From Anthoceros angustus (lineage: Eukaryota > Plantae > Anthocerotophyta): 64,000 bases of DNA. A model generated the notes under the pieces. It saw only the letters and a program-made list of their open reading frames with translations. It was not told the origin of the DNA and searched no databases. Of the stretch, positions 13,470 through 56,569 are shown piece by piece. Positions within the stretch are counted from its first letter, which is position 1, and the number at the start of each line of letters is the position of its first letter. Made by a program: the position numbers and the translations under genes. Location: NCBI GenBank assembly GCA_010909165.1, contig VJWM01000219.1, positions 1 to 64,000 of the forward strand, written 5' to 3'.

Positions 13470-14150
13470 CATGTGTGAGAACTGAGGCCCTTCCAGTCTG
13501 CCCTACCTCTACTCGGCCTAGGTCACAATATGGAAGGTCCAAGATGAACTTCTCCAAAATGTTGTTATCTCGAATAAGGAAGCGAGAGGCCAAAATCGGG
13601 GCCGACAGGGCCCAGCTTCCTAGAAAGGTCGTTGGCGCTGAGGCCCACGGCCCAAAGACCTGTGTCCCCAAAAGCGGTAGGGAGGGACGCTTGTCGCTGC
13701 GCTAGGTCTCTGGCTGCGCATTCGAAGAAACCTAGGCCAATAATGTCTTCTAGAGATTGCATAACCTGCTTGTCGAAATCTCCAAGTTGAGAAAGAGGGG
13801 GGATAGTGCGAATGAGGTACCCAGGGTGGCGTGCAAAGCAGGAAGAGAGAATGCCGAAGGCCACCTATGGGTTGCCCAACCTAGAGAGGTCCTAGAGAGG
13901 TCGTCGATATGTGCGCAAGATCCTTTTTTAAAGCAGCATCCACAAATTCCCATATAAAGCCCGAGGGCCCGACCGGGACTCCAAGGACCCGCAGCCCTTG
14001 TGGAGAATCAATATCTTCCCCGGGATAATGAAGAGGGGGCATAATACCGGACGAGGACCAAACCTTGCACTTCAAAATTTTAACCTTCAGGCCAAAGGAG
14101 AAGAGGTCACATAGATAGGTAATCATAGAGGAGGAGTGAATCTCCAAAAC
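13470..14150 (-). mobile_element. Degenerate non-LTR retrotransposon fragment (RT C-terminal region, early-branching CRE/R2-like type)
   Basis: GLKVKILKCKVW, GLRVLGVPVG..GFIWEFV, AFGILSSC...YLIRTIPP, QASLPTAFG resemble the G.x.N..KC / LGVPIG / QA.LP...GGLG motifs of non-LTR RTs; frameshifted. Confidence 0.6.
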
Positions 14151-32850: not shown

Positions 32851-35160
32851 CTATCTCCAGTGCCGGTCAAGATTGACACTGAGGTAGCCAGCATTGTGCT
32901 TGCCGCCAGTGCTTCTCATGCCGTCGATGAGATAGCACCAGGTGGAGCCCAGGGCCCCGACAAAGTAGTCAGCATCAGCCGCCATGAGGAAGTTCACCAC
33001 AGTCATGCTGCTGGCCAGTTCCTTGCCCAAGCTTTTCAAGTATGAGCCCATGCTGGTGTGGCCACTTTGCCTGGGCACCTTGGTGTAGTAGAAGTTCCAG
33101 CCTGCGTACTCGGACGACTCATCAATCACTTCCTGCACCACCAGAGCAGCAGCAGCGTCAAACAGCTGACGGCAACATTGTTAGGTAACAGATTTGCCGT
33201 ATGACTGACTGACTTACCTGCATTTCGGAGGAGAGCCATATGTCCTTGATGTGGGGAAACCTGTTGCGCAGTCGCTGGGCCAGGGCCATGTAATCCGAGA
33301 AGCCCTTGATCTTCATCTCGGAGCCCTTGTCTCCCATCCTGACGTGCACACTCAAGAGCGGTCTGGGAACCCACGGCTTGTGGCTCGGCCACACCCACTT
33401 CTCCATGTCCTTCTCCATAACCACCCCGCTGCTATTCGACGTCTGTGTCACATCACCAGAGCCCGATATGAAGCATATAAGCGTCCTCCGACTGTGCGGA
33501 CCGATCCAGTCTATGTGGTTGCACACATCATCAAGACCGGAAGAAGATACCTGGACGGAAACTCGAAGCGTGTTGGCAGCAGCTCTCACGCCAAACGCCT
33601 CGTGCCTGGCCCTATTCATCAGCATGCAGGAGTGCTCGCTTTGGTATCTCATCATGTAGCGAATAGCCTGCAACACCATTCATCCACCCATTCACCAGGC
33701 TGCCCCTGTCAGCACTTCTCCTCCCTTGTCAAACATATTAGAGATGGGTGGTGGGTAGGTAGGTAGGTAGATGGCACAGGACCTGCGCTCGCCACCATCG
33801 CACATTGGCAGTCTTGTAGTTGGTCAAGAGACGGCCCTCCGCCTCCGTGGTGGGCTGTTCACGCTCCCAAGGTTTCCCCCACAACCTGCCACACGTCCAC
33901 ACACCATGTCATACCATGTCCTGCCCTATCTCGTGAGGGAAATCCGAATCATTCCACAGCTGCTCATCAAAGGCAAGCAAGCTTCCTCATACGGAGGTGT
34001 AGCAGTAGCTTACAAGGGCGGCTGGGCCATCCAGATATCCCAATGGGGCGGAATGTCCCTGTCCAGCAACACCCTTCTCTGCATAATCGGCACTTTGACC
34101 TCCTTCAAGCTCCCCATGAGCTCGTACGCCTTCTCTCTGCACTCGGCCGGAGTCTCGGGCACGAAATAGCAAGACCATCGCATGTGGCCCTTCCCTGCAC
34201 CCACAAAAGAACAGCAACCCACAACCCACCACTTCCATCAATCCCTTGCCACTGCATCACCCCAATCGCAACAAGCCTGAATTCCCCAACCCACCAAAAC
34301 CGACCTCGACAGGCCGGGTGTCCGGCAAAGTCGAAATCATGCGTCACCAGCACCCGCTTCTGCTCAATGGCCACCGCGAACATGCCCTGCATATGGTGAA
34401 TCTGGGCCCCGAACCCGTGCTTCGGGTTGTTGGTCCAGGACGCCACCAGGAAGCGCACGCTCTCATCGGAACAGTTCCGCGGATGCTGCAGCAGCCAGAG
34501 GTCCCGCTGCGCCCGCCTGGTCATGGGCAGATTATCCTCGTCCGCGCCCTCCACCTGCAACACCCCGCTGCGCAGCCCGCGTCAGCCAATCCCGCACCGC
34601 ACCCCGCCCATCCCTTCAATCCAGAGGGGAAGCGGGGACTCGGACGGACCTACCCAGGGAGGAAAGGGCTCCCACACCAGAGGCGCCGCGTCCCCGAGAA
34701 ACGCCTCCGACCGCGAATGCTCCAGCTCCACGGGGTCCTCGGTCCGCTCCAGCTCCCGGATCCGGCCCTTCCACAGGCCCCAGACGGGCCACTCCCGTCC
34801 TCCCCGCTCGTCCAGCGCCCGGTGCTCCGCCGCCCGGGCCGCGCAGTCCTCCAGATGCGGCCCCTCACCCCCGTCATGTTCCGCAGCTCCTTGCGGGCCT
34901 CCGCCACCAGCGGGTCCCCTTCTCCTGCATCCGAGCTCCGGGCTGGCCTCCCACATCGCCAGCAGCCACTCCATCTGCTGCATTTCCCAGGCATCACGCT
35001 CCCCAGCTCCACCACCCCGCCTTCCTCCCCACTCCCCCAGCCCCTCTGCCCTCTCCGCCCCCAGCCTCGGCACCGTGTACAGCAGCCACAGGCAGTAGAT
35101 GAGGCCCATCACCACCCCGATCACCATCCCCTTGCAAACCAGCCCCGATCCCGTCCCCAT
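32851..35160 (-). CDS. Type II membrane glycosyltransferase, alpha-(1,6)-fucosyltransferase-like (GT23-related plant family), multi-exon
   Basis: N-terminal TM anchor; FPPW|VEGADEDNLPMTRRAQRDLWLLQHPRNC; HGFGAQIH; QAIRYMMRYQSEH; PRPLLSVHVRMGDKGSEM; IWLSSEMQ; VVNFLMAADADYFVGALGSTWCYLIDGMRSTGGK..AGYLSVN. Confidence 0.85.
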
Positions 35161-37645
35161 CTCCCTCCCCTTCCCTTCCTCACCAAACAAAGCCAATCAA
35201 TCCTCCTCCTCCAGATCCTCCTCCTCCAAATCCTCGAAATCCCAATGCGATCCCTCCTCCTCCCTACCGCCCACCACCCGCGCCCTCTGCGCTCCCGCTG
35301 CGGCCCCCTCCATGTTGCAGCTCCAGGCCCCGCCCGGCGCCTGGCGCTCCGGTGTCCATCACCAAATCCGTGCCCGCTGCAGCCTCTTATGCTCCTCGGC
35401 TGCAACGTCGGCAAAACCCAACAAAACGGCACGGCACGGCGCGGCGCGGATCGGGCCCCTTACCTGTCCGTTTCTCTTCTCGTGTATTCTATTCCTCCGA
35501 AAGCCGGGGATCTCGATCCTGGCGCTTATCATCACACGTCGTATCCTTCAAAATGCGGCTCTCCCGTCCCACCATGGCAGACCAAGTATTCCGCGAGTTT
35601 ATGAATTAGATCAAGTCCCTTCGCGCGCTTAAGTAGAGTAAAGTGATGCAAGTCGTCAAATCTGGCTTCGTTTCAATGTTGAGCTGTCCTTGATAATCCA
35701 TCCATGACTTGAAATGGGCATAAGACTAACGAGATGCTTGTTTCCTCGAGATGCTTGCGGAGATGATTCATGGTGGTACTTGTAGGAAATGGGGCGCCCA
35801 AAAGTTATGGTGGAGTCTTTGTGTTCAGGTTGCGAAAGCTTGGGGGTGTCCAGGAAGGTGATGGTGAAGCTTGGAGTATCCAGGAAGGTGGCGGAGGGGA
35901 ATTTGGCCTCCTGCTTGCTTGCCTTGCGCTGCTGCTGGTGGGAACGGCGGCATTATAACAGGGGAGCCTGGAGGCTCCAGTGCCCGCAGTAATGTCACGT
36001 GAAAACTGCCGACCGTGAAGGAAAACGGGAATAATTGCAACCGCCAGGGGAGTCAGGTGGCAGTGGATAACAGGCCCTCCGACGGGGGCCAACCGGCTGA
36101 CGCTGGCTTCAACATTACCAACGTTTTCTTCTGCCTCACCCGAATAGACCATCCATTAATTCCGCTAAAACAAACCAGACCATCCATTCTTTCGTTGAGT
36201 TACTAGGGTTTGGGAGTGTTTGAATTATTATCAGCATTAGCTATAAGAAGAACTCATATAATATGACATTGAACAAGATCTATATATCTAGCTTTATATA
36301 TTTTTATTTATTATTAAATTTTATATCTACATTAATTAATTTTTATTTTATAATAACTAGAACAGAATGTGAACATTTCTTTGTGACCAGTTTTGATATT
36401 TTCTGGGAACAGAGTTTTGTCGTATTGAACATTCTTTGCTTGCATTGTAGTGGGGACGACATAAAGTACCAACAATATTGATGGAGTATATACCAACAAG
36501 ATGAATAAAGTACTTACACTTGACGCACGCGTTGATGATTACACACACTACTACACTTACACTTGATGATTAGATGATACATGTTTGCTGAAAGTAGGGT
36601 TTTGCTTTTTTAATTCAATGAGTTGTTATGAATAAATTCAAAGTAATGTTACAAAGAATTATAGAAATATAAAAATATAATGAGAAAAAATGCACACCCG
36701 TGATGTGTATACCGCATTGGAGATGTGAAAAAGGGACATATAACATATTATATAAAGTGAAAACTAAAATTCACCCAAAAACATGCAAGTGTTTTACATG
36801 AACTCATCAACATTTCTTAGGTTTTGAGCCTTAAAAATTATTTATTGATATTTAAAATTATATACATATTTTAAATGAATAAAATTTATATTTCCAAATT
36901 TTGATGGTATAAAATTCTAGAGTTTTAAGTAGTAGTGTGAACGTAGTTGTTGCTCTTGCTTCAATCATCGGAATGACATGTAACACTACTCTAGTGATTG
37001 TGTATATTCTTTGGTAGGATGTCATGAGTTTACTCAAAGAATCCTCTCAACTTTGTTAGCACTTGTTGTGAGATGACAAATACATAAGTCAACAATTTTC
37101 CAACAAGGTTCTCATGCAATGTACAATATGTACAATGTACACTACACCTACACATTTATGGAGTGTATTTCATGCTTCCATGTCCTCAAGAACATATCAA
37201 GAACTTTTCATGAAAAGCTTGAAATAATGCATTCTTATAATTGAACTATATACAATTATGAAAAAGTAAAAATAAGATGCCTAGGGATACACAAATTTAG
37301 GATCATATGATACTATACTTAACACAGGAAATGGAATATGGCATAATTGTGTACACAGCCACTAGGTATTGTGTACTAATTTAATTTGTCAACTGTACTC
37401 AATAACACTGACTCAACCAACGGACACGTCCAGGTCAGCTTCCGCTTTTGGCGGTTACTGTGCTGTGCACTTGCTTTATAGCCGCCTTCAGCTAGCCCCA
37501 GCTACTACCTTTCTTTCTGCTGGCAGTTCCACTAATTGCTTGAAGGTCCAAGTAAAGAGGATGAACTACACTAAGTGATGCTTTCCTGAAGCTGGTTGCA
37601 TGTATTCATGTTGCAAGGAAAAAGCTACTAGTTAGACGCACGGAA

Positions 37646-39270: not shown

Positions 39271-40165
39271 TACTCAAATGTGAACTTCATTGGAAGCTAC
39301 AAGTAAAGCGAGAATTGAGTGTGTCCTTACCCATCTTAAAAAATAAATTTTGTTCAGTTATTGCATAAAATAATCCATGTAGCATGTATGAAGGGACAAG
39401 TCACTAATTTATCACTTGAGATTTGTATCATTGATCCAAGTATTAAGAATTTATTAAAATAAATCCTATTTAATTAATTTTTTTCTTATCTTGAACTTAC
39501 TCACAAAGTATGAATGATTATGCTTAAATTTGTAGCCCTTATGAGAAGGTTTAGAAAAATTTAAATGAGCTCTATATAAACAAGAACTTTTTTTACACAA
39601 AAAATATTGGAGACCAAGAAAACACCTTCCAAATTGTCATTAGTATTATTTTTTTTCACAAGGTGTGTAGACGTAGGAAGCCCTTAGTATTAATTATGGT
39701 GTTCAATTATTGATGCATGGTTGCTTAAAGAAAGGGTGCATGTAATAATTGACATGCTGGGTACCTACCTATACAAAAATTGTATTTAAGATAGTTTAAC
39801 TTGTAGTGTTTGAATATGTACATTTTTATTAGTATTATTGCATGTCAGGCCATATATTCACTAGCATTGGATTTTTTAGATCCATGTGGACAACAGGTCG
39901 AATACTCCATGATCTGCTAACGGAGTGGATTATAGATGACAACTGTAGCACCCACTATAAGATGACAAGACTAAAAGTAAAGAAATTGCTTACAACATGT
40001 TCTCATATACTTTAAACCTTCAAGCATCCTTGAAGCGACATTTTCAATCATAGGTATGAAGTTTAGATTTGAGCTTGACAATTCGTGATCCTGATGATAA
40101 TCAAAGTTTTATAATATATAGAGTTTTGAATATTTTCTCTTTATTGGCATTGACTAGAAGATGGA

Positions 40166-40989
40166 TGTCGTGCGTGCATCACCGGCTGTTGGGCACACAA
40201 GGTACGTGCATCCCGCGCTCCAGTCCGGCCCGACCTTCAGCTGCAACAAGAAAACAGGGCAAAAAGGAAATTCTGTCCATGCCACACCAGACAAGCCAGC
40301 AGCGCTCACATGTGCTGTGGCGCACCTCGGTGCAAATACGAATCAAAAGGGCTGCCCTACACGGGCTGCCTGGAGTTGGTAAATCCGTGACCTGCTGCAG
40401 CACCCACATACATTGCAATCGTTCTGAGCCACATGCACACCAAAACCTTGCATTCCAATCAGAAATCCAGCAACACCGCGGTTTTGCGTGAGTCTCAGCA
40501 ACATTCCCTTTCCACGGACTTGACAACTGGTTGTTGCAGCTGCCATCGCCAGTCTTGAGGTCTTGGCCGCCATCATGAGCAAGCACCTCCCTCTCGGTGT
40601 GATGAGGCCACCACCTCGCGTGATCCTTTGGCGTTGCAGCAGCGGGCTTCATGATGTAGCCCACGAGCCACCTGCCGGGTTTGCAGCCCTGGTTCTAGAA
40701 ATGACCTAAATGGCCTAATAACCTATCCTGATAATGTCAGTTAAATAGCTTCATATGGGGTAAGCTAATTAATAGCTATTTCCTAATGGCCAAAATCACA
40801 TATATAGCCAGCCTACCTCTAGGCTACTATATATATTCTTGTGAAACAAGTCTGGTGCCACGACAGCTGTCGTGCGTGCATCACCGGCTGTTGGGCACAC
40901 AAGGTACGTGCATCCCGCGCTCCAGTCCGGCCCGACCTTCAGCTACAACAAGAAAACAGGGCAAAAAGGAAATTCTGTCCATGCCACAC
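40166..40989 (-). repeat. 3' terminal repeat block B1-A2-B2 (B = 122 bp, A = 577 bp)
   Basis: B1 and B2 differ by one transition. A2 matches A1 (49111-49687) apart from 4 transitions and 3 small indels (by-eye alignment). Confidence 0.95.
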
Positions 40990-40990
40990 A

Positions 40991-41000
40991 CCCCCCCCCC
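40991..41000 (-). other. Polypurine tract (G10 on the minus strand) abutting repeat B1
   Basis: Minus strand reads ...AGCT-GGGGGGGGGG-TGTGTGGCATGG, the PPT-then-TG arrangement of LTR retrotransposons. Confidence 0.7.
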
Positions 41001-41274
41001 AGCTGATGGACGGGCTAGAAGAAAGGCAGCATGGACGAAGAAGGGAGAACTGGAATTATCCAGCACCTGGAAGGAAAGAATAAGGAAACCCCAAACAGCA
41101 TCAGCATCACAGCCATGCTCAAGCACGATTGCAACGCTATGGGGCCATAGCACCTGTCACACGTAGAATGGCAGATGCCACATGAACCCAATTGTGACTA
41201 GCAGCCATGAAACCTTGCAATGCAATCACATCCATCTTCACAACTGAAAACGAATTGAAACAGTCACACCTGAG

Positions 41275-41450
41275 TAGCAGTTTCAGCACACTTTGAACAA
41301 TACCAAAGTTGCTCAGGAACCTCAGCCAAAGGTGGCTGCAAGCAGAAAAGGTGGAACCCCCATTGCATCCATCACAAAGCAGCATGAGCTCTCGTCATCC
41401 GTGCGGCTGCAGATCTGGCATGGGTAATCCGCTGGCGGGATCCAATCAGC
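41275..41450 (-). CDS. PHD finger at the C-terminus of the retrotransposon polyprotein (frameshifted)
   Basis: Frameshift-corrected: YPCQICSRTDDES-MLLCDGCNGG-FHLFCLQPPLAEVPEQLWYCSKC = C4HC3 PHD consensus. Confidence 0.9.
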
Positions 41451-41479
41451 TGTTACAATGGTGGGGTCAAGGTTAGGGA

Positions 41480-42560
41480 GATGGCACGGGCACAATTTTG
41501 GTGTGATCAGAAATGACCCTGCCATCAGATCCCTGCAGCACCAACACTCCATTGGACTTGACCTCCTGATCCTAAGCACATGTCTGCTGCTGGAAGTCTC
41601 AAGAGTGTCAGCTGTTTGGCGTTGAAGATACGAAATCCCCAGCCTGGAATTTCTTAAGCTTGGGCCTGAAGCTCCGCTGCAGTGTGGGCGCTTAGTGTGT
41701 CCCGATGCTGTGCAATGTGCAAATTTTCCATAGCCATCGGCATCACTCGACGGAAAAGGCAGCCCTGTCACCTATCATCCTAGCCCAAGTGGCTGGATCA
41801 TCCAGCGAGACCACGGCCTGCATCTGTTTAGCGATGGAGCTAGGTGGAACAGGCTCCTGCCAAAAGAAGGAAATAGGGTGAGAAATGAGCTAGGAAGCGT
41901 GCGGCTCATTCCCCCATCAATATATAAGGCAGCATGATGTCCCAATCCCCTTCGGCTGCTGCAGACAGAGCTATGGAGGCCCTTTTGATGGTTTGAACCA
42001 TCCTCTCAGCCAACCTGTCGGCCTGAGGGTGGTCCCTGCTGGTCCTCCTGTGGTCAATTAGTGCCACATCCAACAGGTCTTGAATTCCCTCGAATTCTGA
42101 ACCTTGGTCGGTGAGACACTCACAACTGCCAAAGCGGCACGCTTCTGCAAGAAAGCCTGTGATGTGCTCCTGGATGACTTGTCAGGCAACGCCACGGCCT
42201 CCACCCACTTGCTAAAGTGCTCTATCATCACCAAGATGTACACGCTACCCCTTGGTGTCTTGGGCAGCTCTCCATGAGGTCGCAGGACCACCTGAAGAAG
42301 AGCCCCATGATGGGGAGTGGGTGCAGCTCTGGGTGCTGCATAGTGAAGGATGTTTTGACGGTCACATGGCTCACAGCAAGCGACACATTCCCGGACTTGT
42401 GCATGCATGCCAAACCAGTGGAAGTGAGGGGCCAGCAAGCTGTAGGTCCTCTTGACTCCAAAATGCCCCATGTCATCATGTACTCTTGAATGAGATCAGC
42501 ACGATCTCCGGGAGGTGGAACCAGCCGTTCCACACCATGGGCCCGCCTCGGATGAGGTAC
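41480..42560 (-). CDS. DDE integrase (HHCC zinc domain, rve core, C-terminal domain), frameshifted
   Basis: GHFGVKRTY...WFGMHAQVRECVACCEPC; LHPLPIMGLFFRWSCDL; YILVMIEHFSKWVEAVALPDK; CLTDQGSEF; HRRTSRDHPQAD.LAERMVQTIK. Confidence 0.93.
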
Positions 42561-42859
42561 CCATCTCTCCAGTAGTAGGCAGCAGCACGTTGCTGTACCG
42601 CTCACATTCTGCTGCTGTCCAATCTTCACCTAGCTGGCCAGTTTGCACAAACTGAATTGTATGCACGTCCTCCCATATGTCCTTGGGGACATGTTGAGCT
42701 GCTGCAACCTCAAGCTGTCAAGGCATGTCATGGCCACCAAGGCAGCTACAGCAAAATCTGCCTGTCCTCGTGGCTGATCATCCTCATCCTGCCTAGCCTC
42801 CGTGGCATCCCTACAGCTGCTATCCGGATTCCTGGAGAGGGTGTCCGCATTCTGATGTG

Positions 42860-44231
42860 ACACCCCGGCCTGTGCTCCACATGGAAGTTGTAATCCTGCA
42901 AAATCATGGCCCAGCGAGCAAGTTTCCGCTGAGCTTTGTGTTTGTCATCAGCCACTTCAAGGGTTGATGGTCAGTGACAAGGGTAAACTGCTGCCCATAG
43001 AGGTAAGGTCTGAAGTGGCAGACTGCCCAAACAGCGGCGAGGCATTCGCCCTCATAGCTGCTGTAATTGGCCTCAGCACGGTTGTTGCTGCGTGAGGCAA
43101 AGGCAATCACACGTTCCTTCCCTGCTCATCCTCTTGCGCAAGTACAGCACCCAGCCCCAGACTACTCCAGTCTGTATGAAGCACAAACGGCTTGTCAAAA
43201 TTGGGACGAGCCATAATGGGTGATGTGCTGAGCCGCTCTTTCAAGGTGTCAAAAGACTGTTGAGCATGCTCATCCCACAGCCACTCCACGTCCTTGCGCA
43301 ATAGGTTGTTCAGCGGTTTAGCAATCCTGCTGAAATTCTGGATGTACACCCTGTAATAGTTGCACAATCCTAGAAATGCCCGTAGTGCTGACACATTGGT
43401 GGGCTTCTTCACCCGCTGAATGGCCTGGATCTTGGCTGCATGAGGCATGACTCCATTGGGCACGATCTTGTGTCCCAAGTATGCTACAGTGCTCATCCCA
43501 AACTCACATTTGGAGGGGTGGCACGTGAGCTCAGCCTTCCGCAACCTAAGGAACAGATCCTCTAGATGTGCCAAGTGCTGCTCAAAATCCTCGCTGTGCA
43601 CAAGGACATCGTCAATGTAGCACATCAAATATGCTGCACCTGCTAGCACAAGATCCATTATCCTCTGGAAGGTGACTGGTGCATTTTTAAATCCAAAAGG
43701 CATCACCAGCCACTCCCACAGCTGCTGAGATCCATGGAAGGCAGTCTTCTTGATGTCCTCCTCAGCAACCGGCACCTGGTTGAATCCTTGGCGTAGGTCA
43801 AGTGTGGAGAAGAAGACTGACTGCCCAATGCGGTCAAAAATTTCTTCAGGGGTCGGCATCGGGTACCGATCCTGTGCTGTTGCTGCATTTATGGGACGAT
43901 AGTCCCCGCACATCCTCTTCTCAGTCCACAGCCCTTGGCTGTCCTTCTTGGGCGGCATCACGGTGGCAGCAGCATAGTCACTGCTGGAGGGCCTGATCAA
44001 CCCTGCTTCCAGCAATTCCCTACAGCGGGCGTCCACCATGTCCCATTCTGTCTTGCTGAGACGGTACCTTCTCCTGTAGATGGGCTCCGAGGTGGTAAGG
44101 TTGATCCTAAAGGTCAACACATTACACCTCTTCAGCTCCTTCATTGAGAAGGCGAAGCAGTCTCGATACTTCAGCAGTAGCACGTGAATCCTCTGCTTCT
44201 GTAGGTCTGTGAGCTCATCCCCATCTTCCAA
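42860..44231 (-). CDS. Reverse transcriptase and RNase H
   Basis: RMCGDYRPIN..DRYPMP; FSTLDLRQGFNQV; WLVMPFGFKNAPVTFQR; CYIDDVLV; FVLHTDWSSLGLGAVL; IAFASRSNNRAEANYSSYEGECLAAVWAV..FTLVTDHQPL. Confidence 0.97.
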
Positions 44232-44469
44232 GGGAAATTATCAGCTGTGACCTTTGTTGATGCTCCATGCTCACTTCCCTTGTGGTCAGATGCGGAAAAA
44301 GCAGACCTGTTTCCCCATGTAGGCTGCTCCACCCCCAGCATCTGGCCAAAAGGGTAGGTGAGTGTAGCCAGGAAAGGAAAATGGACAGCATCTGCTGGGC
44401 ACATACTGGCCAGCAAGCTAGGAAGGGCTACAGCTGCAAACTTGGCGTGCAATTGAAAGGCGAGGCAGA

Positions 44470-45395
44470 GGCTGACCAGCCAAGTAATGGCGTGAAGGTC
44501 CATGGCTCTGCCTATGGCTGCAGCACGCTGGGGTCGAGTGACTTGAGGTGCTGCTGTAGAGCCTGTTTGAAACCCATCAGGCGCCTCGCCTCTACTCCAG
44601 GTTCCTCCCATTGCTGAGTGGTAGTGTTAAGGAGCATGCCATTGCCTTGAGCTCTGTATGCAAAAGAGCCTGGAAAACTCACGAGCGTGGGCAACGTCTG
44701 TCTCGGCTGCCCTGGCACATTGGTAGGGAACCAAGGTGCACGCTCACTAGCAGTGACTGGCTTGGGCTGATGATGTGGTTCCAAGACCAGCTGCAGCTGC
44801 AAGTGGGGATCCCTGGTGGTGCCACGTAAGGCTAGCTGAACCGAAGAGGGACAAGGTTTGTCCAATAATTGCGTAGCCTGTGGGCATAGCTACCCACCTG
44901 GGCAGCATCCATAAGGAATGGGAGCCCACATAATGCTGCACAATCACCATGTCCTGTTGCACATGTGGGCGTGAGTCCAGCTGGGCAGGTGTGTTTTCAA
45001 GAGATAAGCACAGCGTGGATTATCTTGCTGAGCCCATGCGAGCACCTGGTGCAAGTCCCGAAGAGGCCTGAACGTGCATCTTCTAAGCCTTGGCCACGGC
45101 CTGCCCTGGAAAACCCCTGGCATTCCCAGCCAGCGATGACCATGTCCACAGGTCCCAAAGCATGGATGTGGGCCTGTTGGATGTACTGCACATCCTGTGG
45201 CCAGGCCGTAAAACGCTGTGAGTGGCCTCTGGGGGTAGTTGGAAAGCGCTGTTGCAGCCCAAGCAGTCTGAAGGCTGCAATGTCCCTGGCTATTGGGTCC
45301 TTGTCACAATAGACATAGCGCGGATAGTGAGCCCGTCAATAGCAAAGCCTCCAGGCCAGTGCAGATACCCCAAATAGCTCTACCACCGTTAGTTC
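44470..45395 (-). CDS. C5 cytosine DNA methyltransferase domain inserted between protease and RT (frameshifted)
   Basis: Motifs in order: I VVELFG(G)ICTG; II YVYCDKD; IV DMVIAGWECQGFSRAG; V DARSGLF; VI YLLENT; VIII DAAQVGSYAHRLRNYWTN; IX E-RRLMGF; X AIGRAMD. Confidence 0.9.
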
Positions 45396-45699
45396 AGGCT
45401 GAGAGGGTGCCCACGTGATCACAGTGCAGTTCAGCAGCTTGTCCTGTGTGGGATGCGCCAACCCTGTAGCCACAAGGCTCTGGACACGTTGCAATTGAGC
45501 CTTGGCATTCTGCAAACGTGCGGCCACCTCAGCAGGGTAGTCTGGATGAGCCATGGCTTGAGACAAAGTGCTGCCACTGCCAGGTGAGTCCTCATCAGCT
45601 GCAGACTCCAGCTGCCGTTCTACATGGGCAGTGTCCTCACTAGCTCGCCAAGGTTGCAAGACTGAATGTCACAAACCATTTGGCAGGCTACAAGCGAGC

Positions 45700-46150
45700 C
45701 ACATCAGCAACTGTTTTACCATGAAGGTCCAGTGGCAGATGCGCCACACGGAGCCCCTTGTCTCCAATCAGGCCTGTAAAGGCTTGTTCCGTCCAGTTGT
45801 CCACGCCAATGCCTGGTGGGTACAAAATTCTTGACCCAACAAGACATCGAGTTGGTGGCTGTGGTCACAAGACAGGGCAATGACAAGGTCATCTCATCTG
45901 GCGTGCCGGGTTAAGGGTAATATCCACGGTCGGATGGTTTCCCCACACTGGCTCAATTGCCCTGGAAGCAGTCCTGATGTTCCAGGGTGATGTGCGAAGA
46001 GCATCACCCTTCAGATGCAACCTGGCTGCCAGCACCTTGCCGATTATGACTGGCTGTGCACCTGTGTCAAGCAGCACCACCCTGGGTGCGTAACCATTCA
46101 CTGTCACGTGCCCTGCTCGATTATCAACAACAGCTAACCCGGGTGTTGAG
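45700..46150 (-). CDS. Retropepsin-type aspartic protease
   Basis: PRVVLLDTGAQPVIIG within ORF 45889-47403. Confidence 0.85.
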
Positions 46151-46899
46151 CCTGTTGGTGGCTGCACTCGTGGTCTGTCACCAACTTGGCCTGCCACCTG
46201 TACACTGCAGACTCCTTCCAGCAAGCCGGAATGCATTCGTGGCTGCTCCATGGGCTGAAGGCTGCTGTCACAGCGTGACGATCTGTCTGGTGGGAGTTCC
46301 CACAATCGGGCATGAGCAACCACAGGATCGGGCTCATTGCATGTGGCCACAACTTCTAGTGTCTGCATCATTTGCTGCAGCCGGCTGGGTGTAACTCCAA
46401 GCTCCTGGAGAGTGAAGAGTGGGATCTCCGTGAGCCTCTTAGCCACCTGTTCAGCAGTGACAGCCTGTGGAAGCAAGTACAATTTTTCCGCGTGATATGC
46501 CCTGCCCCTTTGAGGGGCTGATCCACTTGGCTCTGACCTGGATGAAGAATGGCTCTGCCCCTGATCGGAATGGCAGAACCTGGCGGCAATGGCACATAGG
46601 ATTGAGGCATCACTGCCCTCGCCTCGTTGCCTAGTGACAGGTCCAGTAGCTGCTGATGTAATGTCCAGCGTGGTATTTGGGAGCACATGCCCCACCCAGC
46701 TGGTCGGCATCACAACACGTCCCTCTTGGCTGTCACTTGGTGCCTTATCCGCTGTGCAGACCTGATGTGGCAGGCCGTAGTCCTCTCCTTCAGGTACTGC
46801 AACAAGTTCTACTGCTGCAGCCGGTTTGGCTCCTTCAGCACTAGAGAGATTGGCCACCTGCGTGGCCAATGCTGCCAGTTGTGCCTCCAAGGTTGCGAC

Positions 46900-48060
46900 C
46901 TTCTCAGCATTGGCAGTATTCTTGGCCTTGGCCTTGTCACGTTGTTTGCTCCGTGAAGGCCCTGCTGTTCCAGCTGCAGCAGCTGTAGGTGCCACTGCTG
47001 TCCCACCAACCTCTGCCTTTGCCTTCTGATACCGTCTCCGGATGTTTCTGGAAGCAGACCGTGACAACATGGCCGTTCTTCTGGCAGTGAGTGCAGAACA
47101 AACCCTCCGATGGACACTTGCATGCAGTGGACAAGTGCTCTGGACTGCCACAGTAATTGCATAAGGCTGCCGCAGGTGCTGCTGTAGTAGCTGCCCCTGC
47201 CTTGGCTGGCTTAGCTGGCCCTGCCCTTGAGGAAGCTCCCCATGCGTGGTTGACCCCTTGTTGGTGAACATGGACTGGTAGTGATGGAAGGACTTGGCAT
47301 GCTTGGAGGAGAACACCGAGTAGGCGATCTCCTTCTTCTCCGCCTCTTCATGCACTTGCTCCAAGGTGTAGTTATCACCATATTTGTCCACCAAGGAGGA
47401 CACAAGCTGGAAGTGAAAAGAGAATCACCCTCCAGGGCAACTAAGAATTTCTCCGCTGCCTCCTGATCCGTCAACATGCCAGTACCCTCACGTAGCTTTT
47501 GCAGCCTACGGAAGCACATCTGGACTGTCTCCCTTTCTTCCTCGCAAAAGTAGCCAACTCAGCGATTTTCTCCGGAGTTTTGAGGGGAAGGCCTTTTCCA
47601 GAATCTTCAGAAACTCCTCCACGGGGTTGGCATGCTTGGGAGTCTGGATGAACTCATCAATCCCCTGCGTTGCTGTTGTCCTCTCCGCTGGGGTGAGGGG
47701 CTCACCACTGTAGGAGGCTGCACGGTGGCAGCAACAGTGCCATTAGCAATGGCCTGTTGATGAGCTGTAATGGCGGCCTGCAACTTGGCATTGTAGGCTA
47801 GCTGCAGCGCCCCTGGTGCAAAGGATTCAAGGTCTGCACCGTGGCAGTCAAATCTGCTTGGTGAGCCTCGTACAAATCCAATGCCTCATCAGCCATGTAG
47901 GCAGACAGCTGTTCGAACATGTACAGGTGATTGTACAACGCAGTGCTTGAACTTCACCCGGCTGATTGCCTCACTCACACGAGGCGGAAATCTCTCAAAG
48001 ACATAGTCCCAGGCCTGCCTGAGAATTTTCGTGCCTACTTGATGGTCCTGACTCCATGGT
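46900..48060 (-). CDS. gag region with CCHC zinc knuckle (frameshifted)
   Basis: FCTHCQKNGHVVTVC (C-x2-C-x4-H-x4-C) at ~47070-47110; helical gag-like segment LTDQEAAEKFLVALEG..YTLEQVHEEA. Confidence 0.8.
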
Positions 48061-48587
48061 ATCAGATCCCTCCGAGAGGTCAGCTTTAGTCTGTCCTCCT
48101 TGTGCTGTTGAAATCACCAATGAATGGTCAGCACCTTGGCCTCCACTATCCTGCCTCAAGTCACCAAAATCTGGTGCAACTGGATCGGGGCCTGGTTAGC
48201 AAAGGGACCAACTTGTGCCTGCAGGTTGTAGCTGCTCAGCACCAGGATCTGCTCCCGCTGGGTCTCCTCCTAGAGACAGCCGTTGCCGTTGTGCCGCCTC
48301 CTCCTTGCAAAGACCCTGGCTGGCACGTCCCTTGTCCTCAGTCGATGGCGTGGACTACCTCCTCCTCGTCAGAGGGCATTGCCCATGTAGACAGCACACC
48401 AGAGATCAGCCACCAGCAAGGTAAGCAAGTGCAAGGCAGCCTCCGAGAAAGCAAAACCCCAGCCACAGAATCAATGTGAAACGCAAAATTCCTGAACACA
48501 CCAACGCTGCAACTCTGATCCTTCTCCTCAGTAAGCAAAGGGACCTGGAATATCACTATCCTAGCACCTATGCTGCAACAAGGGAAG

Positions 48588-48955
48588 TGATGGCTGCAAA
48601 TAGCCAATTTCCCCAACTGAACCCTAAGTGCCCAACCTTTCCAAGGCATTCAGTCCTTGGATTGCACTCGAAAGTAGACAAAATGGTACCAACAGATTTG
48701 TCTCAACAAGGCGAACACTTTGGTATGCAAATCAGCGGAAACCGACCTGTGGATCGATCGCTATGAACGCTGATGGCTGCAAATAGCCAATTTCCACACC
48801 TGAACCCTAAGTGCTCAACCTCTCCAAGGCATTCAGTCCCTGGATTGCACTCGAAAGTAGACAAAATGGTACCAACAGATTCGTCTCAACAAGGCGAACA
48901 CTCTGGTATGCAAATCGACGGCAACCGACCTGTGGGGCGATCGCTATGAACGCTG
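48588..48955. repeat. ~183-bp tandem duplication in the element's 5' leader
   Basis: TGATGGCTGCAAATAGCCAATTTCC...GATCGCTATGAACGCTG at 48588 and 48771. Confidence 0.9.
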
Positions 48956-49110
48956 GAAGACTTGGGCAGCTTGCTGCAGATGAAATGCAGCTGCTTCTGC
49001 TGCACAATCAGGGCGTGTGGGGATGCTGCCTTGCTAGAGTTGCACGGCCGCCTCCACCAGCTCACTCGCCTCACACGTGAGCTCCAGCAATTGAAAGCAG
49101 TTGTCGAAGT

Positions 49111-49687
49111 AGACAAGCCAGCAGCGCTCACGCGTGCTGTGGCGCACCTCGGTGCAAATACGAATCAAAAGGGCTGCCCTACACGGGCTGCTTGGAGTTG
49201 GTAAATCCGTGACCTGCTGCAGCACCCACACACATTGCAATCGTTCTGAGCCACATGCACACCAAAACCTTGCATTCCAATCAGAAATCCAGCAACACCG
49301 CGGTTTTGCGTGAGTCTCAGCAACATTCCCTTTCCACGGACTTCGACAACTGGTTGTTGCAGCTGCCATCGCCAGTCTTGAGGTCTTGGCCGCCATCATG
49401 AGCAAGCACCTCCCTCTCGGTGTGATGAGGCCACCACCTCGTGATCCTTTGGCCGTTGCAGCAGCGGGCTTCATGATGTAGCCCACGAGCCACCTGCCGG
49501 GTTTGCAGCCCTGGTTCTAGAAATGACCTAAATGGCCTAATAACCTATCCTGATAATGTCAGTTAAATAGCTTCATATGGGGTAAGCTAATTAATAGCTA
49601 TTTCCTAATGGCCAAAATCACATATATAGCCAGCCTACCTCTAGGCTACTATATATATTCTTGTGAAACAAGTCTGGTGCCACGACA
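49111..49687 (-). repeat. 5' terminal repeat A1 (577 bp)
   Basis: Near-identical to 40289-40865; not followed by a B copy. Confidence 0.95.
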
Positions 49688-50049
49688 TGGACATCAAATC
49701 ATTTCCCTTGGCAATGAGAAGGCAAAAGAAGTCCTCCCTTGAGGAATGACATCTACACATGGCTGCATTTGAAACTCCATGTTTCAAGCACCCTTGAGTT
49801 GGATCACTTAGGATAAGTTGCTACCCATCCTGTGTTGTAGAAAAAAGCTTGGGGTGCTATCCATCTCGCGTCATAGAAAAAAGTCATTCGAGATTGCCTT
49901 TGTAAAAAGTCCTATGGGGCTATTGATATTAGCTCTATTCAAACACAAGATAATATTGCTTATATGGTTTTGAGAAGGCAATGATGCCATCCATCTTGAC
50001 TCTGTAATACCAACTAACGCCTTTGATGCCTTTTGTATAACATAGACAA

Positions 50050-50292
50050 GAATCCAAAATCTTTAATTTTGGTAAGCAAAAGATGTAAGAAAAAAGGGGT
50101 GGAAGAAAAAGGCCTTGAACACCCTCTCTTCAAGGAGTGACTTCATACATGGGTTCATTGGAACTCAGTCAAGAATCTAGAATCCTTGCTTTAATTTTGG
50201 TAAGTGAAAGATGTAAGAAAAAAGGGGTGGAAGAAATAGGCCTTGAACGCCCTCCCTTTAAGGAGTGACTCCATACATGGTTCATTGGAACT
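50050..50292. repeat. ~127-bp tandem duplication
   Basis: TTTAATTTTGGTAAG...AGATGTAAGAAAAAAGGGGTGGAAG...AGGAGTGACT.CATACATG..TTCATTGGAACT occurs twice. Confidence 0.8.
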
Positions 50293-51101: not shown

Positions 51102-53818
51102 GGGCAGAAGAGCACGTCACACTTTCAGGCCTCGGCCACTAAAGACGTACTGGGTGTAGATTTCTGGTCAAAAACACTAGCTTCTTTTAAGAAGATGTGC
51201 ACCAATACTCATCTTCAGCTGCCGCGTTGCTCTCACCAACACCGTCAATTGCAGCTTCACGATTGCAGCATTCCAATTGCAGCGCACTGCTTCTGTTGTC
51301 TGATGCAGACCTGCACCTGGCGGAGCGAAGAGGTCAGACTACTGTACAGAGTCACTGCTCAGTTTGACATCCATACACAATGGCTGGAAATTAGCTGATG
51401 TTCTCGGGGTCGATGAATCAGACAGTTACAGAAGGCTGGCTTCTTGTCCATTAATGATTCAGCTGGCCGCTCGAGAGAGAAACTTGTGTTATGTTTCTCC
51501 CACCGACCAGTCATGAAGGTTCTCGTGTTGATGGAACGTGCCTCCCCGCTCAAGCCCTTGGGTAGTTAAAAGTGCAACATTTTGGACGGGTGCCTCTGGT
51601 CTCCTGCTGAATGTGTGGACGTCCTGATCATGCTCAATCCAGCTCTGGCCAGGTTCCTTGACCCCTGTCCTCAGTCTCAGGTCATCTATCTCCCGTGCCG
51701 ACACCCACATTCCAGCTTGTGAATAGATATTTGACATGAGCACATATGATCAATGTTTTGGCTGCAAGTTGACTGCTCGATCAAAGGCTCTTCTTCCCAG
51801 TGCTACATTTCCATGTTTCCGGCCTGGCAATGACAACCACATGGTCAGATTAGGGTCCACCGGCATTTTCAACAAAACACAGCTTCTGCCAAGCTCAAGT
51901 CCTGCGCGACCGAAGAGGTCAGCGAGTACCATAATGCTCTGAGGCGAGATACCAATCTCTGATCATGGCTTGAAAGTACTCCAGGCCTTGTCCACCATGC
52001 CAGCATGGCTGCATGCGGATAGGAGCGAGAGGAAAGTCACTGCTTGGCTCTAAGCCTGTCACACATATCTTCAAACAGTTCTACACTCGTGGTGTAGTGT
52101 CCTTGAGGCGTACCGGCAATTAACTCAAGCCCGCAGGCTTTTCTGGGGTAGTGAGTCAAAAACAAATCGAGCATCTAACATGCACCCACATTTGCTGGCA
52201 GGCATGAAGGCAGTTCAACCAACCAGCTGCCGTCAAGGCCACTGCTTACGAGTGGATTTGATAACAGTTCCTCAAAGCTCCAATGTTGCTGCTTCTAACA
52301 TGCACAAGAACGTGATTTCATCTGGTTTGACACCTGTGCGCATCCAGGCATAAAGTTGCAGCCTTCTCCCCTCTTCATGCTGGGCATAGCCAGCAAGCAT
52401 CGCATTCCATGATAAATCTCGCTGGGCCAACCTGTAAACACATCTTCCGCAGTTCTGATGCTCCCAGTTTTGCATACATGCTAAAGAGTTGCAGAAAAAT
52501 AGATCTGAGTTGAACCCCATCTGAAAAGCTTCAGCATGTATCTCTTCCCCATGCGGAGACTGCACTTTGATGGCTTGCCCATCAACAAGACTACTTTCTT
52601 CCTTCTCTGCAAGGAGACCATGCTTGAAGCACACTAGCGAAAGTGTGCCCATCAGGAGAAACGCCTTCCTTCTCATCCGTCCATAAAGGTCCATAGCCTT
52701 CTCTGCACGGTCCTGCTGGGCGTATCCTGCAACCATTTTCCACGACACCACATTGCGCTGGGACAGTCTATCAAACACATATTCTGCATCTCTGACGCTC
52801 CCGCACTTTGTGTAAACACTAACAAGCGTGGTGCCAACAAACACATTCGACTCCATACCTTTCGAGCTTCGCCGTGTAATGTTTTCAGCTTCAGTCCCTC
52901 CACCTTAACCACCTGGCCGTCCACCAGGATGCTTTCCTCCTTCTCAGCAATGCTGCAGCAATCACAAGGTCGGTGATCAGGAGTAACACCTGCTGCATTC
53001 GCTCATACAGCACAAAAGCCTCCTCTCCTTGGTTGCTGGGCGTATCCTGCAAGCAGTCCATGACACCACATTGCGCTGAGGCAACCTGTCAAACACATGT
53101 CGAGCGTCAGATAAGCTTCCACACTTGACGTACATGTCGACCAGCGCTGCACCCACAAACAAATCAACCTCACATCCCTGCCTCACCATGTCCGCATGGA
53201 TTCGCTTCCTTCTTCCGGGTCTGGCTCCACACGCTCTGAGTAAGCTCGTGAACGTATACTTGTTGGCCTCCACACCTTCCTGCTGCATTTGCTGATACCC
53301 TTTCAAAGCCTCCTCCATCTCCCAGCCTTACAGTACCCCGAAATGATGACCGTCCAGGTATAACCTGTTCTGCGAGACAATTTCCCAAACACCTGCAGCC
53401 CATCTGCAAGGCCTCTTACCATTGCCTCCACCACAGATTCACCCAAATACATGTTCGATTCCAGCCCACTTTTCACCAAATGGGCATGCACCTGCCCCTG
53501 CCAGGCCTTGTTCTGCATGCACCTTCAGTAGCTTGTCGTACACTTGCACGGAGGGCATGCTGCCTGGTTGCTCCATAACCTCCAGAGCCTTCTCCAGCCA
53601 TCCCTGACTGGGTGCCATCTGGCCAGCTAGGGCTGGCCCTGACAGTCAGAGCCATACCAGCACACGTTTTCCTGTTAGTGCCACACATGCCAGCATAGTA
53701 GTGTGCTGCACATACATTGCAGACAGTATACCAAAACCTCTGATGGCAGCATAAGGTGGATTCTTCTCACCGTGCATTTTCATCTTAGGTCCACTACGGA
53801 CTATACTTAAGGGGTGGT
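51102..53818 (-). pseudogene. Deletion-riddled tandem copy of the PPR locus at 53819-56693 (pseudogene or assembly false duplication)
   Basis: Collinear with 53819-56693 but about 155 bp shorter through scattered small deletions, with few substitutions; all frames are broken. Confidence 0.85.
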
Positions 53819-54214: not shown

Positions 54215-56569
54215 TTATGTTTCTCCCACCGACCAGTCATGAAGGTTCTCGTGTTGGATGGAACGTGCCTCCCGCTCAAGCTCCCCTTGGAGTTTAGTTA
54301 AAAGTGCATACAACATTTTGGACTGCGGGTGCCTCTGGTCTCCTGCTACGAATGTGTGGACGTCCTGATCATGCTCAATCCAGCTCTGGCCAGGTTCCTT
54401 CCAAGCCCCTGTCCTCAGTCTCAGGTCATCTATCTCCCGTGCCGACACCCACATTCCAGCTTGTGAATAGATATTTGACATGAGCACATATGCCGCACAA
54501 TGTTTTGGCTGCAAGTTGACTGCTCGATCAAAGGCTCTTCTTCCCAGTGCTACATTTCCATGTTTCCGGCAGGCCCCAAGCAATGACAACCACATGGTCA
54601 GATTAGGGTCCACCGGCATTTTCAACAGCACAGCTTCTGCCAAGCTCAGAAGTCCTGCGCGACCGAAGAGGTCAGCGAGAGTACCATAATGCTCAACTGA
54701 GGGCGAGATACCATAATCTCTGATCATGGCTTGAAAGTACTCCAGGCCCTTGTCCACCATGCCAGCATGGCTGCATGCGGATAGGAGCGAGAGGAAAGTC
54801 ACTCCGCTTGGCTCTAAGCCTGTCATACACATGTCTTCAAACAGTTCTACACTCGTGGTGTAGTGTCCTTGACGGGCGTACCCGGCAATTAATGCACTCC
54901 AAGCCCGCAGGCTTTTCTGGGGTAGTGAGTCAAAAACAAATCGAGCATCTAACATGCACCCACATTTGCTGTAGGCATGAATAAGAGCAGTTCCAACCAA
55001 CCAGCTGCCGTCAAGGCCACTGCTTACGACATTGCAGTGGATTTGATAACAGTTCCTCAAAGCTCCAATGTTGCTGCACGCTTCTAACATGCACAAGAAC
55101 GTGATTTCATCTGGTTTGACACCTTGTGCACGCATCCAGGCATAAAGTTGCAAAGCCTTCTCCCCCTCTTCATGCTGGGCATAGCCAGCAAGCATCGCAT
55201 TCCATGATACCAAATCTCGCTGGGCCAACCTGTAAAACACATCTTCCGCAGTTCTGATGCTCCCAGTTTTTGCATACATACTTACTAAAGAGTTGCAGAA
55301 AAATAGATCTGAGTTGAACCCCATCTGAAAAGCTTCAGCATGTATCTCTTCCCCCATGCGGAGACTCCGCACTTTGATGGCTTGCCCATCAACAAGACTA
55401 CTTTCTTCCTTCTCTGCAAGGAGACCACATGCTTGAAGCACACTAGCGAAAGTGTGCCCATCAGGAGAAACGCCTTCCCTTCTCATCCGTCCATAAAGGT
55501 CCATAGCCTTCTCTGCACGGTCCTGCTGGGCGTATCCTGCAACCATTGCATTCCACGACACCACATTGCGCTGGGACAGTCTATCAAACACATATTCTGC
55601 ATCTCTGACGCTCCCGCACTTTGTGTAAACACTAACAAGCGTGGTGCCAACAAACACATTCGACTCATACCCTTTCCGAGCCGCTTCGCCGTGTAATGTT
55701 TTCAGCTTCTGCAGTCCCTCCACCTTAACCACCTGGCCGTCCACCAGGATGCTTTCCTCCTTCTCAGCAATGCTGCCGCATGCTTGAAGCACAATCACAA
55801 AGGTCCGGTGATCAGGAGTAACACCTGCCTGCTGCATTCGCTCATACAGCACAAAAGCCTCCTCTCCTTGGTTCTGCTGGGCGTATCCTGCAAGCATAGC
55901 AGTCCATGACACCACATTGCGCTGAGGCAACCTGTCAAACACATGTCGAGCGTCAGATAAGCTTCCACACTTGACGTACATGTCGACCAGCGCTGCACCC
56001 ACAAACAAATCAACCTCACATCCCTGCCTCACCATGTCCGCATGGATTCGCTTCGCTTCTTCCGGGTCTGCCAAGCCTCCACACGCTCTGAGTAAGCTCG
56101 TGAACGTATACTTGTTGGCCTCCACACCTTCCTGCTGCATTTGCTGATACCCTTTCAAAGCCTCCCTCCATCTCCCAGCCTTACAGTACCCCGAAATGAT
56201 GACCGTCCAGGTATAACCTGTTCTGCGAGACAATTTCCCAAACACCTGCAGCCCATCTGCAAGGCCTCCGCATCTTACCATTGCCTCCACCACAGATTCA
56301 CCCAAATACATGTTCGATTCCAGCCCACTTTTCACCAAATGGGCATGCACCCGCTTTGCCCCTGCCAGGGCCTTGTTCTGCATGCACACCTTCAGTAGCT
56401 TGTCGTACACTTGCACGGAGGGCATGCTGCCTGGTTGCTCCATAACCTCCAGAGCCTTCTCCAGCCATCCCTGACTGGGTGCCATCTGGCCAGCTAGGGC
56501 TGGCCCTGAGTCCAGGCAGAGCCAGCATACCAGCACACGTTTTCCTGTTAGTGCCACACATGCCAGCAT
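54215..56569 (-). CDS. PLS-class PPR protein with E1-E2-E+ C-terminus and no DYW domain (organelle RNA-editing factor type), 784 aa, single exon
   Basis: P-L-S triplets (..ALVDMYVKCGSLSDARHVFDRLPQRNVVSWTAML..); C-terminus WLSLLGACRKHG..AYVLMSNIY..WKEPGQSWIE..HTFVAGDQRHPQ then stop. The true start may lie ~90 bp upstream. Confidence 0.95.
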   Translation of the reverse strand: MLACVALTGKRVLVCWLCLDSGPALAGQMAPSQGWLEKALEVMEQPGSMPSVQVYDKLLKVCMQNKALAGAKRVHAHLVKSGLESNMYLGESVVEAMVRCGGLADGLQVFGKLSRRTGYTWTVIISGYCKAGRWREALKGYQQMQQEGVEANKYTFTSLLRACGGLADPEEAKRIHADMVRQGCEVDLFVGAALVDMYVKCGSLSDARHVFDRLPQRNVVSWTAMLAGYAQQNQGEEAFVLYERMQQAGVTPDHRTFVIVLQACGSIAEKEESILVDGQVVKVEGLQKLKTLHGEAARKGYESNVFVGTTLVSVYTKCGSVRDAEYVFDRLSQRNVVSWNAMVAGYAQQDRAEKAMDLYGRMRREGVSPDGHTFASVLQACGLLAEKEESSLVDGQAIKVRSLRMGEEIHAEAFQMGFNSDLFFCNSLVSMYAKTGSIRTAEDVFYRLAQRDLVSWNAMLAGYAQHEEGEKALQLYAWMRAQGVKPDEITFLCMLEACSNIGALRNCYQIHCNVVSSGLDGSWLVGTALIHAYSKCGCMLDARFVFDSLPQKSLRAWSALIAGYARQGHYTTSVELFEDMCMTGLEPSGVTFLSLLSACSHAGMVDKGLEYFQAMIRDYGISPSVEHYGTLADLFGRAGLLSLAEAVLLKMPVDPNLTMWLSLLGACRKHGNVALGRRAFDRAVNLQPKHCAAYVLMSNIYSQAGMWVSAREIDDLRLRTGAWKEPGQSWIEHDQDVHTFVAGDQRHPQSKMLYALLTKLQGELEREARSIQHENLHDWSVGET

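Follow-up and report, generated by a model that had tools for sequence, protein, structure and literature searches.

The 64,000 nucleotides of contig VJWM01000219.1 from Anthoceros angustus (hereafter the window) contain, at positions 40166-49687, a retrotransposon that carries split direct repeats in the order A1-internal-B1-A2-B2. The best explanation as a whole, which we consider probable while keeping clear reservations, is that this locus belongs, as a defective copy, to the streptophyte Gypsy-DNMT3 lineage with the Ty3/gypsy order gag-PR-DNMT3-RT-RH-IN (protease, PR; reverse transcriptase, RT; RNase H, RH; integrase, IN), and that the lineage, whose integrated form is normally A-internal-B-A-B, reaches it via an intermediate in which two long terminal repeats (LTRs) are joined. 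The evidence for this comes from the ends and target-site duplications (TSDs) of the window element and its relatives, from the positions of the reverse-transcription primers, and from the joint between A2 and B2.

Repeat layout, relatives and target sites

Coordinates refer to the whole 64-kb window, and the element lies on the minus strand, which is its coding strand. The repeats were defined by a repeat search, BLAST and direct reading of the sequence. The order on the minus strand is A1, gag-PR-DNMT-RT-RH-IN, G10, B1, GC, A2, G and B2, as follows.

49688..49691, minus strand: upstream copy of the TSD, TCCA on the coding strand and TGGA on the plus strand, equal to 40162-40165 (direct reading)
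49111..49687 (49687->49111), minus strand: A1 repeat, 577 bp, starting with TGTCGTG, with a putative promoter and R-U5 (repeat search, BLAST)
49110->40990, minus strand: internal region, 8.1 kb, between A1 and B1
41000->40991, minus strand: G10 tract, followed by a T at 40990 directly before B1 (direct reading)
40989->40868, minus strand: B1 repeat, 122 bp, ending with CACGACA (repeat search, BLAST)
40867-40866, minus strand: GC dinucleotide between B1 and A2
40859..40874, minus strand: perfect 16-nt palindrome at the B1|A2 boundary, CACGACAGCTGTCGTG, composed of CACGACA, GC and TGTCGTG
40865->40289, minus strand: A2 repeat (repeat search, BLAST)
40288, minus strand: single G joining A2 to B2
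40287->40166, minus strand: B2 repeat, ending with CACGACA (repeat search, BLAST, direct reading)
40162..40165, minus strand: downstream copy of the TSD, TCCA on the coding strand and TGGA on the plus strand (direct reading)

The outer ends TGTCGTG...CACGACA are bracketed on both sides by TCCA. An earlier note, made from the sequence alone, had described both this anatomy and the ends with their 4-bp TSD; the former was reproduced by all three approaches, and the latter were read directly. A1 and A2 are 98.6% identical, with about 8 differences of which 3 are indels, and B1 and B2 are 99.2% identical. A Ty3/gypsy element is expected to have two complete identical LTRs, TG...CA ends and a TSD of 4-5 bp. 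The window element has the ends and the TSD, with A only at its 5′ end and B-A-B at its 3′ end in place of the two LTRs. The palindrome at the B1|A2 boundary is putatively composed of two integrase end sites lying face to face.

A search with the window RT found relatives that are 46-75% identical to it; they come from the liverwort Calypogeia fissa (65% for the copy in this species), several Closterium strains, Klebsormidium nitens and many JGI/Logan contigs, and DNMT-RT-RH-IN stand in the same order on those contigs of relatives whose DNA was read. Complete A1-internal-B1-A2-B2 copies are present in Closterium L002 and L014, which represent two different families, and in a third family (L015) A1 and the B1|A2 boundary are present before the contig ends. 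The 3′ ends of the liverwort copy L001 (Calypogeia) and of the moss-associated copies L008 and L011 consist of a G-run, B1, A2 and B2. For the moss family, metagenome contigs were scanned for a 21-mer of its A repeat; this yielded 120 loci, and the tally with L008 and L011 includes 122: 75 A-only 5′ ends with internal sequence next, 35 B-A-B 3′ ends, 3 full A~B-A-B copies (two of them one locus), 5 solo A-B, 2 B-A and 1 A~A-B. Neither an A-B-A arrangement nor a canonical 5′ LTR, with B-A next to the primer-binding site (PBS), was found among the 122. Since the same order occurs in Closterium, in the liverwort and in moss-family loci, A-internal-B-A-B is the norm of an old lineage and not a local accident.

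These results bear on the possibility of a one-off rearrangement or mis-assembly of a conventional two-LTR element. BLAST within the window found no second copy of the element, and the indels between A1 and A2 together with the frame changes in the coding region could hint at assembly noise. Nevertheless, the order recurs in independent insertions in Closterium, the liverwort and about 40 moss-family loci, the conventional B-A|PBS 5′ LTR was seen in no relative, and a TSD brackets the permuted form, which leaves this explanation with almost no probability.

Other searches and contigs added less. A protein search with gag-PR found no relatives, and the exact B|A junction of the window had no match in the metagenome contigs. 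The best K. nitens match to the window RT is 49% identical and lies on a 4.6-kb contig (L136) that stops inside IN, where repeats and DNMT are unreadable. L003-L007 and L012 are old or different copies with no clear repeats and were set aside. At L001 3805-7572, a minus-strand long interspersed nuclear element (endonuclease and RT) and an inverted solo A-B replace the 5′ half of the element in a nested, rearranged locus, and the 5′ part of this copy was set aside as evidence on A1. Positions 13935-17147 of L013 (Closterium NIES-67), where a 112-bp inverted overlap folds back to the contig end, were also rejected as a probable assembly artefact.

Among the 12 copies for which both flanks are available, 6 (the window copy included) have a perfect 4-bp TSD, compared to about 0.05 expected by chance.

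Window: TCCA, perfect
L014: AGGG, perfect; the terminal CA reads TA
L038/L045: TTTA, perfect
L133: ATTC, perfect
L088: ATTC, perfect
L009: CAAA, perfect; an A-internal-B derivative
L017: flanks CATT and CATC, 3/4 match
L020: flanks CAAT and CAAC, 3/4 match
L110: flanks with 3/4 match
L002: no TSD
L053/L102: no TSD; solo copies
L003: no TSD

The end sequences TGTC(A/G)(T/C)G...C(A/G)(T/C)GACA are kept from Closterium to land plants. Together, the TG...CA ends and the recurrent TSDs are what a DDE integrase leaves behind when its substrate is tipped by the start of A and the end of B. The earlier note had proposed that the permuted form is what was integrated, to be checked on further copies; this check, carried out on the relatives, bears the proposal out, in that A-internal-B-A-B recurs and sits between TSDs both in the window and elsewhere.

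The B|A boundary, in which ...CA and TG... are separated by two bases, is likewise kept in Closterium, liverwort and moss as ACAGCTGT with flanking symmetry, and in old copies of the moss family transitions have often eroded its two central bases GC. The leader of the window element contains another ACAGCTGT (about 47912); a reading of it as the remains of a B|A junction from a different family was rejected, the similarity being at chance level. In one Closterium family, the central C before TGTCGC is kept at the outer end (L002 5935-5950 and L013 9425-9440), and L002 likewise retains the central G that follows GCGACA (13630-13645). In this family, it looks as if the molecule had been opened at the exact center of the palindrome.

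Two further loci differ from the common form. L009 4395-13356 (the same locus as L010), a moss-family copy with largely open frames, reads A-internal-B with one B and without A2-B2, between copies of CAAA; it may be either a product of B1/B2 recombination or a direct insertion after both palindromes were cut. L126 (minus strand, 2531-3006), also from moss, reads internal-G-run-B-A and then continues into unrelated sequence without B2. No other locus is a candidate for an unpermuted 3′ end, and if L126 is not one, it is a truncation.

Primers, the A2|B2 joint and the proposed route

Directly before B1, all copies read have a run of G (G6-G10) or, in Closterium, a purine tract, and this is the putative plus-strand (polypurine) primer. 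At the other end of the internal region, the sequence that abuts A1 is complementary to a site inside A1, and comparable pairs are found in the relatives.

Window, 49340..49352, minus strand: self-primer site CAGTTGTCGAAGT, inside A1 at element positions 336-348, perfect 13-nt complement of the sequence after A1
Window, 49098..49110, minus strand: PBS ACTTCGACAACTG, 13 nt, abutting the end of A1, a candidate by its complementarity to A1
L002: PBS ACAAACAGAGT, primer site in A ACTCTGTTTGT, 11 nt
L014: PBS ACAAACAGAAGT, primer site in A ACTTCTGTTTGT, 12 nt
L015: PBS ACAAACAAAAGT, primer site in A ACTTTTGTTTGT, 12 nt
Moss family: PBS AATTCTAGAAAAACT, primer site at about position 160 of A, 15 nt, in many copies

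As a control, 2000 random windows of the internal region were compared, and none had a complement as good as that of the window PBS. Among the three Closterium pairs, the differences are compensatory, with changes on both sides. In the window copy, the 13-bp helix of primer and PBS closes the predicted R-U5 fold in both the minimum free energy and the centroid structure; the overall free energy of this fold is not unusual (z = -0.78), and only the closing helix is informative. In the moss family, a TATA box (TATAAAAGG) lies 32 nt upstream of the primer site. These features suggest that the PBS after A1 is self-priming, as in Tf1, with a transcript start presumably at the primer site. A tRNA-type PBS was also considered: the window contains no tRNA genes, and the TGG-containing start of A2, proposed by eye, was dropped upon finding the self-primer complement.

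With a PBS abutting A1 and a G-run before B1, the reverse-transcribed LTR should be B·GC·A. The tips of such an LTR, the start of B and the end of A, have neither TG/CA nor an inverted repeat. Because the primers lie at the start of B and the end of A while the integrase sites lie at the start of A and the end of B, the inserted copy would not be the direct product of reverse transcription. The earlier note had equated the structure with a circle of a (B+A)-LTR element opened at B|A, and the positions of the G-run and of the self-priming PBS support this.

Host recombination, by tandem or solo-LTR type exchange, could in principle have produced the layout from canonical B·A-LTR insertions, and derivatives such as solo A-B and A-internal-B do exist in the family. 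It is nonetheless highly unlikely: no canonical B·A-LTR insertion was seen among about 80 5′ ends, the B·A tips lack the TG/CA and inverted repeat just mentioned, and the TSDs flank the start of A and the end of B. For the derivatives themselves, the solo A-B and A-internal-B forms with TSDs, later A1/A2 or B1/B2 recombination fits, and cutting of both palindromes could also account for them.

The A2|B2 joint was compared between copies. In the moss family, the start of B2 is invariant, at the base after the position of the G-run, while the A2 side ends with TTC plus 1-4 bases of the PBS prefix AATT, a number that is not the same in sister copies of the tree. In L002, the start of B and the spacer preceding the PBS share a microhomology of 5 nt, and the joint falls on it. 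The joining of two cDNA tips after ragged primer removal would give such a variable joint. Since its length differs between sister copies, with 0-4 PBS-derived bases, the comparison suggests that the joint is made anew in each insertion and not copied from the parent.

In the route that we propose, RNA would begin in A1, at the primer site or close to it, and end in A2. The minus strand would be self-primed in the manner of Tf1 and the plus strand primed from the G-run, giving linear DNA with B·GC·A LTRs whose outer tips would not be integrase substrates. The right tip (the end of A plus 0-4 PBS bases) would then be joined to the left tip (the start of B), either by end-joining to a 2-LTR circle or through template jumping of the RT from end to end. 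The DDE integrase would cut the palindrome ...CA|GC|TG... in the PBS-proximal LTR, and the opened molecule, with A at one end and B at the other, would be inserted with a 4-bp duplication. B2 and the A2|B2 joint would be by-products, and retranscription would not be required.

Alternatively, reverse transcription might directly make a linear A-internal-B-A-B molecule, by priming at the palindrome or by jumps on two RNAs, with the integrase trimming its ends. This would explain why a single permutation is seen, and the palindrome could form single-strand hairpins. However, the only recognizable primers are the G-run and the self-primer PBS, which set the start of B and the end of A as tips; there is no purine tract before A2 and no PBS after B; and the ragged A2|B2 joint with its PBS-derived bases resembles two joined cDNA tips. 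We regard direct synthesis as unlikely, although worth keeping in view.

Several observations weigh against the route through joined LTRs. We infer all of its steps (transcript ends, cDNA and circles) from sequence. In a symmetric 2-LTR circle the palindrome is present twice in identical form, yet A-B-A-internal-B, the product expected from the other cut, did not turn up at any locus; the real intermediate therefore has to be asymmetric in some way. L002 and the solo copies L053/L102 have no TSD, and the central C and G are retained at the ends of L002. The window joint, TCT-G-GTGTGG, is not exactly the end of A plus the start of B1 (T-GTGTGG) but is one base off, and the variation in joint length may in part reflect ordinary indels of an A/T-rich stretch. 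Finally, no TATA box was found just upstream of the primer site in the window copy.

Coding content and neighboring sequence

Stop-to-stop pieces of the coding strand were scanned against Pfam, and the frames were compared by tblastn with the proteins of relatives. The Pfam matches are, in order, a weak CCHC knuckle, an aspartic protease, a C5 methylase fragment, RVT_1, RT_RNaseH, Integrase_H2C2 and rve.

46940..48028, minus strand: gag region, interrupted (tblastn with moss gag; zf-CCHC E=5e-4, which just misses the Pfam cut-off)
45715..46173, minus strand: aspartic protease (Pfam Asp_protease_2; tblastn with relatives)
44545..45530, minus strand: DNMT3-like C5 cytosine methyltransferase domain, frame-broken (Pfam DNA_methylase E=5.6e-6, in one piece)
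43119..44222, minus strand: reverse transcriptase, open frame (Pfam RVT_1 E=1.4e-31)
42723..43158, minus strand: RNase H, across three frames (Pfam RT_RNaseH; frame changes by tblastn)
41270..42483, minus strand: DDE integrase with H2C2 zinc finger, core and C-terminal region, with frame changes and stops (Integrase_H2C2 E=3.7e-13, rve E=5.5e-5)
48588..48953, minus strand: tandem duplication, 183 bp, 93% identity (repeat search), in the 1.7-kb untranslated leader from A1 to gag

The order PR-RT-RH-IN with a DDE (rve) integrase is that of Ty3/gypsy elements, and in a PDB search the RT-RH of the relative L001 is nearest Ty3 (E=6e-67). The DNA_methylase fragment sits between PR and RT; its alignment with the DNMT domains of relatives changes frame, and the intact domain of L001 is nearest DNMT3A/3B in the PDB search. 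This DNMT3-like domain, which marks the lineage, had been missed by the earlier note, whose assignment of a DDE integrase agrees with the Pfam matches and with the Ty3-type RT and RNase H. Comparison with intact relatives by tblastn revealed several frame changes in the DNMT, RNase H and integrase regions; the window copy would be either defective or affected by indel errors in the assembly. The integrase region aligns with the IN-PHD proteins of relatives, in which a PHD finger, not a chromodomain, ends the integrase (L001 12146-13159, L008 2914-3213 and L009 12065-13132), and the corresponding part of the window copy is too disrupted for scoring. The PHD finger of the relatives suggests targeting through a reader of histone marks.

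The domain content also bears on a tyrosine-recombinase cycle of the DIRS/Ngaro/PAT/TOC1 type, in which a closed circle is recombined into the target and the recombinase is supplied in trans or has been lost. A-internal-B-A-B is a hallmark of such elements according to the relevant passages of PMC5890265, and L002 and L053 lack a TSD, as this cycle would have it. The search for a tyrosine recombinase that the earlier note had called for was run: Pfam found none in 28 translated pieces of at least 73 residues from both strands of the window element, and no Phage_integrase domain in the scanned pieces of the near-intact relatives, in which the internal region is filled by gag-PR-DNMT-RT-RH-IN. 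Of the features of a DIRS-type element, the window element thus has the split repeats and neither the tyrosine recombinase nor the insertion without a TSD. With an RT and RNase H nearest Ty3, and with TG...CA ends and recurrent TSDs that are the signature of a DDE enzyme, a tyrosine-recombinase cycle is very improbable.

Around the element, two 92-nt direct repeats, 128 bp apart, lie at 50061-50280, just outside its 5′ flank. Three long intronless open reading frames for PLS-class PPR proteins with E/E+ motifs are clustered beside it (52272-52856, minus strand; 54215-56569, minus strand; 57467-61453, plus strand), an indication of a land plant with extensive RNA editing in its organelles. On the other side, a GC-rich block at 34000-36000 (62% GC) contains an open reading frame of 452 aa without a Pfam match and is followed by a stretch of 35% GC up to the insertion site.

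Implications and comparison with known systems

In the textbook route of LTR retrotransposons and retroviruses, a linear cDNA offers both tips to the integrase, and circles are regarded as dead ends. More broadly, and only tentatively, an ancient Ty3/gypsy lineage spread from Closterium to land plants may obligatorily integrate via a joined LTR-LTR intermediate, so that each insertion is a permuted cDNA. If so, it would amount to the 2-LTR-circle precursor model, long abandoned, in a natural and obligatory form, and to a natural system in which the joining of cDNA tips is productive, and the DIRS/Ngaro repeat layout would have arisen in an integrase-bearing element. It would also be a caution for LTR-finding software, which can be expected to take A1 and A2 as the pair and overlook both B2 and the TSD, so that the family is mis-annotated or discarded. 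In addition, an element with its own DNMT3 and PHD finger that is abundant in moss-associated data bears on how transposons interact with host chromatin.

The closest known element is KnitGypsy-Dnmt3 of Klebsormidium nitens, a Gypsy element with DNMT3 in Pol and DIRS-like repeats (de Mendoza 2018, PMC5890265, Fig. 4c), and a 2026 preprint treats the streptophyte 'Gypsy-DNMT3' as an established case (bioRxiv 10.64898/2026.05.21.726589). As described in the passages of PMC5890265 devoted to it, KnitGypsy-Dnmt3 shares with the window element a Ty3/gypsy polyprotein, a DNMT3-like domain in Pol and the layout A-coding-B-A-B. Its host is a charophyte alga, whereas that of the window element is a land plant with PLS-class PPR genes, and the same passages give no TSDs, TG/CA ends, palindrome, PBS or mechanism. 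They place the capture of DNMT in the K. nitens lineage, whereas the relatives described here occur in Closterium, a liverwort and moss-associated samples; the combined domain and repeat architecture extends, on the contigs read, to all three. The hybrid of split repeats and integrase, which the earlier note had believed undescribed, is therefore already in print as a layout, and the window element is a new member; as for its mechanism, we found no published account of the ends, TSDs, primers or integration route of this structure. What appears to be new is the recurrence of TSDs around the permuted form, the palindrome inside the LTR, the self-priming PBS, the variable A|B joint and the G-run or polypurine tract before B1.

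PAT, Ngaro and TOC1 have the same order, A1-internal-B1-A2-B2, which equals a two-repeat circle opened at B|A. They differ in using a tyrosine recombinase, without a DDE integrase and generally without a TSD, whereas the window element is the opposite in each respect and has a Ty3-type RT. Dictyostelium DGLT-A was considered as a split-LTR parallel and dropped, since the papers did not bear this out.

Self-priming is known from the Ty3/gypsy elements of the Tf1/sushi group and the plant Tcn1 clade (PMC6317226). As in these elements, the PBS described here pairs not with a tRNA but with the element's own RNA, at what is presumed to be the start of the transcript. Compared by features alone, Tf1/sushi elements are distinguished by two complete LTRs and, in most cases, a chromodomain, whereas permuted repeats are found here and a PHD finger is found in the relatives.

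The nearest parallel to the proposed cut is retroviral. Passages of PMC1180852, PMC1905944 and PMC4372172 report that retroviral integrases (prototype foamy virus, PFV, and HIV-1) cut the palindromic LTR-LTR junction of 2-LTR circles. In both cases, as far as these passages go, end sites lie face to face as ...CA-nn-TG... and could be opened to integration-competent ends. In retroviruses, however, the palindrome is formed by ligated cDNA tips and belongs to a side path, whereas in the lineage described here it is inherited inside the LTR, the tips form the A|B joint, and the route would be obligatory.

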